From the NCBI GenBank assembly GCA_964035545.1, contig OZ037770.1, positions 9,244,973 through 9,308,972 of the forward strand: a DNA stretch of 64,000 nt. The letters are read 5' to 3'. Origin of the DNA: Bugula neritina (taxonomy: Eukaryota; Animalia; Bryozoa). Of the stretch, positions 17,998-40,273 are shown one piece after another. Below the pieces are notes generated by a model. It was not told the DNA's origin and did not search any database. It saw only the letters and a program-made list of their open reading frames with translations. Numbering within the stretch: the first letter of the stretch is position 1; each line of letters begins with the position of its first letter. The position numbers and the translations under genes are program-made.

Positions 17998-20900
17998 TCA
18001 TTCACACTGGAAGAGATGACTTTGGAAGCTATTCTCTTGCTCAGTATTGGGTTCACAAGGTAGTTTGGGTAGTCTCATTACCTCCCCTGATAATCCTGTA
18101 AAAATAACACAGTTTTTTTATTTGAATGAAAAGAACAGGTTGACATCAGGGCAAACTAAACATTAATCTATTTCCTATCAGCTACCTGATATTAGCTATT
18201 ATAAGCTATGATTTTAGGTAAAAATGGCACACAGAATAATGGCACAGGTATAAGTCTCATTACCTCCCCTGATAATAAATATTCAACATGATCAACTGGA
18301 AACAAATCTGGTTAGCTTACAAAGATAAATATAAGTTACATAAAGCTGAAGATATATTAGATAATTAAAGTATACAAACTACATCAGAAAAAAAGAGAAT
18401 GTGTATAAACAAGAGATATATGAAATACTGTGCAATATATAAGCAAATAACTTATATATTAAGTTATATGATGCTATTTTTGTCATGTTATTTTAAATTG
18501 AATTACATCATAGAAAATTATTATATTATACCTAATGGATAGCTTTATATATATTCACCATTAGAGTATGATATAAAGCTGTTTATAATTTTTGAGTAAC
18601 ATGTACAGCATATAACGATAGGAATAAATTTTGCAGTAATTTAATATAAGAAAATAATATGCTTCAGAAATACATGTAAATATGGTTCGTGTAACTAAAA
18701 GACTGGAGATGTATTGAAGTGTATTTACTAGCGTAATAGTGTGTGCATTCTGAAGTTTTTCGAGAATTCATAACTTTGTTTGCTTCTGACAAAAGTTGTA
18801 TCTAAGCAGTAAATACTCACTTCTGATTGAGTGATTGAAGTCGTACTGAAAAAGAGAGCTGAGTTGTGGAGTCAGCTGAGTCACCACCAGCTGGTAGTCA
18901 AGGCTAGAAAATCTAGCAACTGCTAGATAGAACTCTACAAATACACACAGAGACTTTTAGACCAAGATTCTAACACAAATATATATGTATTAAATGCTCG
19001 CATGTTGAACATATATACAATCAGCCGCCATTTTCAGCTCTATAAAACTGTTATGCTGACTAGAGATTGTCATTTGCATAAGAATTAATATATGTTACAT
19101 TTATTGGTAAGTTAGTGCGTGCGTGCGTACGTGGGTGTGTGCGTGAGTGCGTGCGTGAGTGCGTGCGTGTATGCGTGTGTGCGTGTACATGCGTGTGTGC
19201 GTGTACATGTGTGTGCGCGTGTGTGTGTGTGTGTGCGTGTGTGCGTGTGTGCGTGTGTGTGTGTGTGTGTGTGTGTGCGTGTGTGTGTGTGTGTGTGTGC
19301 GCGTGCGTGTGCGTGTGTGTGTAGTTATACACAAGTACATAGCCATAGTTACCAGGGTTGAGTATAATATAATATAATATAAAACATTGTATTATAGTAT
19401 AATATAATACAATGTAGTATAATCACCAGGGTTGAGAATAGATCTGAACCTGGCCTTCCCATCAGGCATCCTAATAATCTCAAAGAATCTCTCATCCACT
19501 ACATTCATATTTCTGATGTCTGGAGTTGAGAAGAAAGAGTTCTGACTTCTAGCCACATCGTCATAAAACTATAATAATATGTGTAATATAGCATAATAAT
19601 ACTATAATATGAGTACATTACATGTTATCTGTATAATTGGTAATAGATGGTGACTATAAAACCAACTAAAAACAGAAGTTTTCTATCATAGTTCAATAAG
19701 AAACTTTGAAATAACACTAATAGTAGCAATAACAAGTTTAAAAAATTTAGGTGCGGAATATTTGGAGCAAAGAATATGTACGACATTTGTATTTGTTGAC
19801 CCATAGTATCATTTATATGAAATAAATTAGGATAAATACAAGCAAATGGAGCAGTGAACTAGTGGCTAATGCTGGATTGTAAACCTATCTTTTGCTCTAT
19901 AGCATATGTCTTCTTAGTTCAGATACATTCCGTATTATATAGTGTTCATATTTAATAATTCATATGTGGCATAAGTTCTCATGTAATAAGTTGAAGCCTG
20001 TACCTAAAGGATATTTCTATATTAACCACTATAACATAATACATGAATATAGACTCACTTTGAAGTTGATAAGTGCATATGACACGCAGACTCTTTGACT
20101 AGGCAGTATACAATGTATATGAGAAGTTATAATTTTACCGTCAGTTGTATTCGGAGAAAGGTAGTGCATCTAAAAATATGCATTAAATAAGAATTCATTC
20201 ATATAAAACTGAGTTTATAATCCTTGTGAGAAACCCCTGATGGAAAGGGTTTTTGTTAAAGCGGGCTAAGGACTTATTCATATAGGGCCCAAGAGCAATT
20301 ATGACTGGATGCTTTTTCTAACATCACCAATGACCTTTGTAGTGGTTTGAACCCATGACTTTGTGTTTACTAGGCAAACGCTCTAACCCCTAGACCATGG
20401 CTGCTCCTTAAGAATTTATTCATATGACGATAACATATTATAAAAAGACTTTGCACCTTGATTTTTAAGTTTTGCTTTTCTTCTGAAATTTAAAAGCGGC
20501 TTAAGGAAATATTGTTTAGATTCTAGACAATAATTTAATGCCAATGGCATGGTATTTCACTAGATATATTTTAAAATATGAAACTTTAAGTCTGCATGAT
20601 TATTAAAACTGTCACTTTGTAAGAGTATGATTTGAATATGTGCACATTATATCTATTATTTTATTAGACAAGAGATAAACATAATAGCTACATTCCTTGT
20701 TTACAAAAGTTATGAGATACTAGGAGAGTGATACTGAAACTTGAAAGAACAATACTTCATTATATTTTGTGAAGTGTTTCAGCTCTAATTACCAATTGGT
20801 AATTAAATATATAATTTGATTATCATTAGATGTGACATTATGATAATAATGCAAATATATAATTAAATATAAAGCATTATATGATCAGATATAATATTAT

Positions 20901-40100: not shown

Positions 40101-40273
40101 GTATTTATACTTTCATTGCTGAAATACAAATGTTATCAACCTAATACACACTTTTCTTCAACGATTTAGCATATCTGCACCATCTTGATCTCCGTTATAA
40201 GCTGAGATTACTCACCTTGAGTGATAGGGAGAAGACTCAGAGAGAATAGCAACACTAATGCCTGCAGACACAT
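28189..40273 (-). CDS. Secreted 413-aa protein with two IL-1-like beta-trefoil repeats, paralog B
   Basis: Exons 40216-40273, 39535-39672, 38094-38224, 37683-37770, 37221-37376, 35939-36028, 34039-34139, 33242-33367, 29929-30070, 28859-28972, 28189-28286 join in frame (1242 nt). Signal-peptide-like [20 protein letters not shown]; intron phases identical to paralog A. Confidence 0.8.
28403..28650. mobile_element. Mutator-like MITE
   Basis: Perfect 9-bp TSD attagctac; imperfect inverted ends with repeated aaatggcaca/tgtgccatt; internal (aaaccct)-like tract. Confidence 0.8.
29425..29938. repeat. ~45-55-bp tandem repeat derived from the exon 9 end and donor (about 10 copies)
   Basis: Recurring agttac(c/t)aaggttgagta...(aatat)n; the minus strand reads ctcaacct(t/a)g-gtaact, like the real ctcaaccctg|gtagtt. 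Confidence 0.85.
30065..32350. repeat. 28-bp satellite, about 80 near-identical copies, derived from the exon 9 acceptor
   Basis: Unit agaactataatattatgtgtaatataat. Confidence 0.97.
35213..35526. repeat. (TA)n/(TATACATA)n microsatellite
   Basis: Direct reading of the sequence. Confidence 0.95.
36990..37140 (+). mobile_element. Old degenerate copy of the tRNA-derived SINE
   Basis: ggccattagagatgttagcaagggcatttagtcataat...aaaaaccctttctatcaaaggtgttcacagg matches the SINE core and 3' part. Confidence 0.6.

Follow-up and report, generated by a model that had tools for sequence, protein, structure and literature searches.

Genes A and B of Bugula neritina: a tandem pair probably encoding a new bryozoan family of secreted double beta-trefoil proteins

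Two neighbouring genes, here called A and B, lie on the minus strand of a stretch of 64,000 nucleotides (nt) from the bryozoan Bugula neritina (GenBank assembly GCA_964035545.1, contig OZ037770.1, positions 9,244,973 to 9,308,972), which is referred to below as the window and numbered from its first letter. Gene A (17998-25120) and gene B (28189-40273) each consist of 11 exons, with predicted products of 405 and 413 amino acids (aa), and they would have arisen by an old tandem duplication within a small gene family. Judging from the structural models and the gene comparisons taken together, the two probably belong to a new family of bryozoan proteins, as yet without a name, that are secreted and carry two beta-trefoils in tandem, and the tandem beta-trefoil fold as such is considered very likely. 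The encoded protein would carry a cleavable signal peptide, two beta-trefoils joined by an N-glycosylated linker and a short tail with two cysteines; it would enter the endoplasmic reticulum, be glycosylated and disulfide-bonded and then be secreted. Outside the cell, it may act as a soluble binding protein in which each trefoil offers a binding surface built from loops, and the presence of two such modules could allow it to engage two partners or to link them. If the trefoil fold is accepted, the probability would be shared about equally, a third each, between a receptor ligand of the cytokine or growth-factor type, a lectin that binds glycans, and other roles, for example protease inhibition or a matrix and adhesion function.

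Gene models and the bryozoan gene family

The region has a G+C content of about 31%, as in AT-rich eukaryotic DNA. Comparison of one half of the region with the other by blastn and tblastx revealed, on the minus strand, a collinear set of conserved blocks with non-aligning DNA between them, and exon borders were set at the canonical AG and GT sites of these blocks. The joined models of A and B are the basis of the frame, identity, sequon, hydrophobicity, repeat and substitution-rate calculations, and the queries of the homology searches were single Bugula exons or database relatives. All 20 introns of the two genes follow the GT-AG rule, no internal stop codon is present, each frame terminates in TGA, and the intron phases of A and B are identical (1,1,0,1,1,1,0,0,1,1). 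These splice sites, open frames and shared phases bear out, at the level of predicted models, the two intact 11-exon paralogs that the original prediction had described from the letters of the window, and all the peptides it quoted are found in the exons of A and B.

Exon-by-exon searches of the B. neritina genome located four family loci, namely A, B, a third paralog on contig C3 (26535900-26540430, plus strand) and a fourth on contig C6, the window's own (8785500-8791640, minus strand), about 0.47 Mb from the window. In most of their located exons, the third and fourth paralogs have the exon borders and acceptor phases of A and B, at 35-50% identity. A family profile made from exon 9 of the four loci was searched against 1.84 billion representative proteins and gave 13 matches, of which all the named ones are bryozoan: B. 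neritina KAF6026147.1 (P0001) and EB796_013887 (P0014), both with 89-95% identity to gene A, and the uncharacterised Watersipora subatra proteins XP_067951135.1, XP_067950926.1 and XP_067950563.1. Apart from short unnamed metagenome fragments, no relatives outside the bryozoans were found among the 1.84 billion representatives. A domain 2 profile search added one Watersipora paralog, and word-indexed homologue searches with the Watersipora protein P0007 and with P0001 returned only the queries themselves and one fragment. At least three distinct family genes are present in W. subatra (P0007; P0013 with P0012; P0015). P0007 and P0013 are full-length RefSeq proteins of 420 and 415 aa, and exact splice-finder mapping showed that both of their genes have 11 coding exons with the phases 1,1,0,1,1,1,0,0,1,1, equal to those of Bugula, at an identity of 20-23% overall and about 40-45% in exon 9. 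The bryozoan database entries belong to the same family as A and B and have no function annotated.

The two public B. neritina entries are truncated models, one of which starts in intron-derived sequence and covers domain 2 only, the other comprising exons 9-11 only; in the draft B. neritina assembly, the upstream exons were apparently called as a separate 169-aa product. The truncated models can now be corrected. Among sequencing runs, one possible RNA library ("symbiont metagenome") contained 6% of the sampled words, and one run contained 88%.

The exons of gene A divide the predicted protein as follows. Exon 1 (25060-25120; 61 nt) has its ATG at 25120, encodes a signal-peptide-like leader and ends at a phase 1 donor, and its in-frame join to exon 2 gives leader-G-DC, as in Watersipora P0007. 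The mature protein and domain 1 begin in exon 2 (24508-24645; 138 nt), and domain 1 continues through exon 3 (23337-23467; 131 nt, phase 1 to 0) and exon 4 (22845-22932; 88 nt), which carries the DQRLFVY motif, into exon 5 (22465-22620; 156 nt), which holds the domain 1 end and a linker predicted to be glycosylated (WPYITR, NST, NVT). Linker sequence and the start of domain 2 are encoded by exon 6 (21936-22013; 78 nt), which is also found in P0001 and has an equivalent in Watersipora. Domain 2 then extends through exon 7 (21136-21236; 101 nt), whose junction with exon 8 matches P0001, exon 8 (20059-20169; 111 nt), which holds a variable insert and has junctions matching P0001, exon 9 (19427-19568; 142 nt), which carries the VDERFFE motif and is the best conserved exon of the family, and exon 10 (18821-18934; 114 nt), where the domain ends and the junctions match both P0001 and P0014. 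Exon 11 (17998-18095; 98 nt) encodes the C-terminal tail with two cysteines and terminates in TGA at 17998-18000, its junction matching P0014. The whole series of junctions 6|7|8|9|10|11 was recovered independently by P0001 and P0014, which are AUGUSTUS models of B. neritina.

Similarly, gene B begins with exon 1 (40216-40273; 58 nt), which has its ATG at 40273 and encodes a signal-peptide-like leader, and continues with exon 2 (39535-39672; 138 nt), exon 3 (38094-38224; 131 nt), exon 4 (37683-37770; 88 nt), exon 5 (37221-37376; 156 nt), the linker exon 6 (35939-36028; 90 nt), exon 7 (34039-34139; 101 nt), exon 8 (33242-33367; 126 nt), which exceeds that of A by 15 nt, exon 9 (29929-30070; 142 nt), exon 10 (28859-28972; 114 nt) and exon 11 (28189-28286; 98 nt), which ends in the TGA stop. 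In both genes, exon 6 runs from phase 1 to phase 1 with a length that is a multiple of three, and it is easily overlooked because the frame stays open when it is skipped. A 10-exon model lacking it was rejected, as the exon is conserved between A and B, is present in P0001 and has an equivalent in both Watersipora genes. An additional "exon 2" of gene B (about 39790-39877) was likewise discarded, since exon 1 joins the 138-nt exon directly in frame, as in Watersipora.

Divergence and selection

The proteins of A and B are 73% identical, and the ratio of nonsynonymous to synonymous divergence (dN/dS) is 0.27 over 321 codons, with per-exon values of 0.07-0.5. The ratio of 0.27 indicates that both copies are under purifying selection, and on the sequence comparison, which goes far beyond chance, A and B are taken to be real, constrained genes.

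The divergence between the two copies is a mosaic. Exons 3, 4, 5, 9 and 11 show a synonymous divergence (dS) of about 0.09 (94-98% nucleotide identity), exons 2, 7 and 10 reach a dS of about 0.93 (65-85% identity), and the intron DNA lying 21-120 nt from the exons is about 50% identical, which is near the random level. Such a pattern agrees with gene conversion in short tracts, limited to some of the exons, after an old duplication. Tandem repeats also distinguish the introns of the two copies. Only gene B has a 28-nt minisatellite in intron 8 (30065-32350; about 82 copies, 2.3 kb, 98% matches) and a 59-nt array in intron 9 (29426-29874; 7.6 copies) that is derived from sequence just past the exon 9 donor, and intron 9 of gene A (19115-19322) contains a microsatellite of the (GTGCGTGT)n type.

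Predicted signal peptide, glycosylation sites and linker

In a hydrophobicity scan, the sole strongly hydrophobic window of A and of B is the N-terminus. A small-residue motif is located just before the end of exon 1, and the end of the exon right after this motif is consistent with a signal peptide; the in-frame mature start reads G-DC in A and G-VC in B. Clear signal peptides are also present in Watersipora P0007 and P0013. The consensus N-x-S/T for N-glycosylation occurs five times in A and four times in B, including two sites in the linker between the halves. The signal-peptide-like N-termini and the glycosylation sequons noted in the original prediction are confirmed by these features, and a leader for classical secretion is present in both models. 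As regards size, domain 1 (about 140 aa) falls within the trefoil range, and domain 2 (about 190 aa) is larger and contains an insert.

The linker differs among family members. It carries a furin-type site, RTKR, in the paralog on contig C3 and the sequence RKTR in Watersipora P0007, and N-glycan sequons occupy this place in A and B. The RTKR and RKTR sites suggest that some members may be cleaved into two single-trefoil proteins, so the two heads may be separable in some paralogs.

Evidence for the beta-trefoil fold

That each half is a beta-trefoil, of the low-symmetry kind represented by interleukin-1 (IL-1) and fibroblast growth factor (FGF), is supported but indirect, and the evidence comes from predicted features and predicted shapes. 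In a comparison with the ESM Atlas based on language-model features, each of the ten named neighbours ranked highest for either half of Watersipora P0007 was a trefoil family, with scores of 0.90-0.93; the trefoil neighbours comprise AbfB, RicinB_lectin_2, CDtoxinA, Ricin_B_lectin, fascin, FRG1, Inhibitor_I66 and CCL2-like clusters, and the matches share 93-122 of 256 features, a range rated by the tool as distant relative or chance. A shape search with the Atlas's own model of P0007 gave an IL-18 cluster for domain 1 with a template modelling (TM) score of 0.72 over 137 residues, followed by AbfB and ricin clusters at 0.66-0.70, so that its neighbours span 0.66-0.72; for domain 2, the neighbours span about 0.45-0.59, with IL-1 clusters at 0.59 and 0.58 and ricin-type clusters at 0.45-0.54. 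All shape rows for the P0007 halves in which a Pfam family covers the match belong to trefoil families. In addition, the shape comparison of an AlphaFold model of Bugula domain 2 with the Atlas yielded, as named rows, only ricin-type, IL-1 (best, 0.41) and FGF clusters, with TM scores of 0.35-0.41, and the same model in Foldseek against the PDB gave IL-18 or IL-1beta in about 20 of the best 50 rows, with E-values from 0.06 upward. Internal three-fold sequence symmetry was not detected (repeat z-scores of -1.1 to 2.5).

Several points weigh against the reading of the family as secreted tandem beta-trefoil proteins. Sequence searches tie it to no characterised protein: single exons gave nothing meaningful in Pfam, the relatives P0007, P0013, P0012 and P0001 matched no Pfam family even at E 10, searches of PDB sequences with the domain profiles, P0007 and P0013 returned nothing or chance rows, and scans of the genome with Pfam models made no such link either. 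The Atlas model of P0007 has a low confidence (predicted local distance difference test, pLDDT, 0.45), and the AlphaFold2 models reach a pLDDT of 45.8 for Bugula domain 2 (residues 56-216 of KAF6026147.1, 18-row alignment) and 38.5 for Watersipora domain 1 (12 rows). All fold searches with the AlphaFold models (Foldseek, VIA-align and Atlas shape) were below significance, and the support for the fold of domain 1 comes from the Watersipora relative, not from the Bugula protein. An hhalign comparison of domain 1 with domain 2 was not significant (E 0.28), the aligned regions being collinear. The B. neritina models P0001 and P0014 are predictions that used transcriptome hints (PMC7576161), not cDNAs. 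Because the models are poor and the matches of the AlphaFold models sub-significant, the fold is deduced from the convergence of weak signals. Alignments deepened with exon fragments were discarded, as MAFFT aligned fragments of domain 1 with the corresponding positions in domain 2.

The fold comparison by which the original prediction proposed to separate IL-1 from other trefoils gave an intermediate picture, in which IL-1 is not clearly on top and the family does not clearly group with the lectin and fascin trefoils. The two beta-trefoil repeats that it had claimed for each protein stand to the extent that two domains are present and that the trefoil is the most likely fold of both halves, given their trefoil neighbours; the part of the claim that made these repeats IL-1-like in the sense of membership was not supported.

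Relationship to known trefoil families

R-type lectins have a classical architecture comprising a signal peptide, two tandem trefoils, N-glycans and cysteines. The layout of A and B, with a leader, two tandem trefoil-like halves, sequons and cysteines, matches it, and the products could tentatively be regarded as secreted tandem-trefoil lectins that would bind glycans of microbes, of the colony surface or of the Endobugula symbiont, in the manner of the ricin B chain, HA33 or earthworm EW29. The families AbfB, RicinB_lectin_2, CDtoxinA and Ricin_B_lectin are the nearest neighbours by language-model features, the AbfB and ricin clusters are nearly tied in TM score with IL-18 for domain 1 of P0007, and most of the Atlas rows obtained with the AlphaFold model of domain 2 are ricin-type clusters. 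Unlike R-type and AbfB-type lectins, however, the family lacks a ricin or AbfB match in Pfam (PF00652, PF14200 and PF05270 are absent from the relatives even at E 10), no QxW triplets were seen on reading the sequences, the known sugar-site residues are missing, and three-fold sequence symmetry is likewise wanting; moreover, the feature matches to lectins are in the same range of 93-122 of 256 that may reflect distant kinship or chance. A lectin-like function is an equal rival to the IL-1-like reading.

The IL-1-like reading holds that the family belongs to the true IL-1 superfamily, as a divergent, leader-bearing and internally duplicated branch of IL-1, IL-18 and the ancestral-type IL-1anc, signalling via Ig-TIR receptors. 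In this bryozoan branch, a signal peptide would have been gained and a four-exon trefoil unit duplicated, giving a secreted two-headed ligand of the IL-1 type. Such a membership is rather doubtful, and IL-1 kinship is best described as an attractive minority reading, plausible but unproven. In each of the three shape comparisons, the highest TM score by query falls to an IL-18 or IL-1 cluster (0.72, 0.59 and 0.41, all with low-confidence models), and the weak Foldseek list for domain 2 is dominated by IL-18 and IL-1beta. However, the AbfB and ricin trefoils trail IL-18 and IL-1 by 0.02-0.06 in TM score, and the language-model neighbours of the P0007 halves include no IL1 or FGF cluster. The trefoils also lack the three-fold symmetry that is seen in the sequences of most ricin and AbfB lectins, which is in keeping with IL-1.

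The intron phases provide a further argument. Introns 1 to 3, lying on either side of exons 2 and 3 of domain 1, show the phases 1,1,0; a further phase-1 intron comes next, and Watersipora shows the same series. Exon 3, with 131 nt and phases 1 to 0, equals exon 6 of human IL1B in these respects, and a gapless reading of the two proteins from the beginning of this exon aligns LEIES with LEFES, which is taken as a lead and not as a test. The phases of domain 2, 1,1,0,(0),1, reproduce the pattern 1,1,0,1 with one phase-0 intron added, and this repetition agrees with a unit of four exons having been duplicated in tandem, in spite of the non-significant profile comparison of the two domains. It has been reported that 1,1,0 is also the phase pattern of the last three introns of IL-1beta genes, in which the last three exons encode the twelve trefoil strands (PMC4880838); in invertebrate IL-1 genes, the two central trefoil introns are reported to have conserved phases (PMC13736523).

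Invertebrate IL-1 homologues exist and likewise escape sequence searches, and secreted exceptions within the superfamily are known in lamprey IL-1.1 and IL-1Ra (PMC13736523). Nevertheless, the known invertebrate IL-1anc proteins are leaderless and have a PDZ domain with one C-terminal trefoil, none having two trefoils (PMC13736523), whereas the present family has a leader, no PDZ match and two trefoil-sized halves. In trefoil shape as predicted, in low internal symmetry, in the phases 1,1,0 and in a divergence beyond the reach of BLAST and HMMER, which it shares with IL-1anc, the family resembles the IL-1 superfamily; it differs in its signal peptide, in the two trefoils per chain, in the absence of a pro-domain and in being found so far in bryozoans only. 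The textbook protein with a leader and two trefoils in tandem is an R-type lectin, not a cytokine.

Sequence motifs argue against IL-1. The Pfam IL1 family (PF00340) was not matched in P0007, P0013, P0012 or P0001 at E up to 10, and no exon-level match was found genome-wide; the latter search is weak, as none was obtained in control genomes either, and the same method with PF00167 located a locus on contig C7. The original prediction had seen a near-fit to the IL-1 family signature, a PROSITE-type pattern. The best site, FRSILNPEFYLAV..., has 3 mismatches in the 10 fixed positions and is equalled by 523 of 2000 shuffled sequences (26%), which is the level of chance, and the Watersipora proteins show 4-5 mismatches at unrelated sites. 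Similarly, it has been reported that the IL-1 family has a conserved F/LES motif in strand 9 (PMC13736523), and domain 1 of A and B contains LEIES, but this F/LES-like motif is shifted or absent in other members: in Watersipora P0007 it reads MEFTS and is displaced by three residues, and in the third paralog the sequence is IELLRL. The long open reading frames (ORFs) of the window that were scanned included no recognisable receptor or TRAF gene. Of the double-domain cytokine-like family with an IL-1/FGF fold that had been proposed, the leader for secretion and two probable trefoils are retained, and IL-1 membership is not supported.

FGFs offer another comparison, being secreted trefoil ligands with a signal peptide, and an FGF cluster is among the shape neighbours of domain 2. 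The stretch DERFFE...YLAV resembles the core motif of FGFs. Unlike the present proteins, FGFs have one domain encoded by three coding exons; the FGF model PF00167 matches none of the relatives and, in the genome, only the locus on contig C7, which is taken to be the canonical FGF gene.

It is unlikely that the halves are not beta-trefoils at all and that all-beta models of low confidence have produced the trefoil neighbours artificially. Such an artefact would agree with the low confidence of all three models, with the AlphaFold model of Watersipora domain 1, which gave only noise in Foldseek, and with VIA-align Z-scores of at most 4.1. It is opposed by the convergence of two predictors, two species and two domains on the trefoil, no other fold class recurring, and by the predicted all-beta content together with a domain 1 size in the trefoil range and a domain 2 enlarged by its insert. 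A role as a protease inhibitor with a trefoil fold, of the Kunitz-STI or I66-like kind, or as some other extracellular trefoil protein that does not signal, is very improbable. Inhibitor_I66 clusters do occur among the feature neighbours of P0007, and the weak structural lists include 3vwc, a trefoil inhibitor from a fungus, and the Kunitz inhibitor 7jow, but the inhibitor rows rank low, there is no Pfam match, and no reactive-loop motif was identified.

Other features of the window

A complete Ty3/gypsy-type retroelement with long terminal repeats (LTRs) occupies positions 40857-48294. Its 300-nt LTRs (40857-41156 and 47995-48294) are 100% identical, its G+C content is about 50-59% as against about 31% in the surroundings, and its ORF of 1466 aa (42237-46637) contains protease, reverse-transcriptase, RNase H and integrase domains, with flanking ORFs of 288 and 357 aa. 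The element is located 584 nt upstream of the start codon of gene B and may for this reason affect the promoter of gene B. A further ORF of 542 aa on the plus strand (12282-13910) has a reverse-transcriptase domain, likely of the non-LTR type, and one of 205 aa, also on the plus strand (51189-51806), contains ankyrin repeats. The long ORFs at 9366-10592, 11478-12236, 7405-7983 and 430-915 have no Pfam match, and no Rfam RNA family was found in the window.

Significance

Immunity and cell signalling have hardly been studied in bryozoans. The IL-1 homologues of invertebrates have been recognised only recently, by structure prediction, in a paper in which bryozoans are not mentioned (PMC13736523). 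A family of secreted double-trefoil proteins that is specific to its lineage and has retained intron phases like those of IL-1beta is a concrete candidate for testing in this context. If the family were a cytokine-type ligand, it would represent a new architecture for the IL-1/FGF fold, and if its IL-1 kinship were true, the proposed ancient IL-1 lineage would reach the Lophophorata in a form unlike any described IL-1. If it were a lectin, a new sequence family would be added to the trefoil lectins, from an animal that is host to the bryostatin-producing symbiont.

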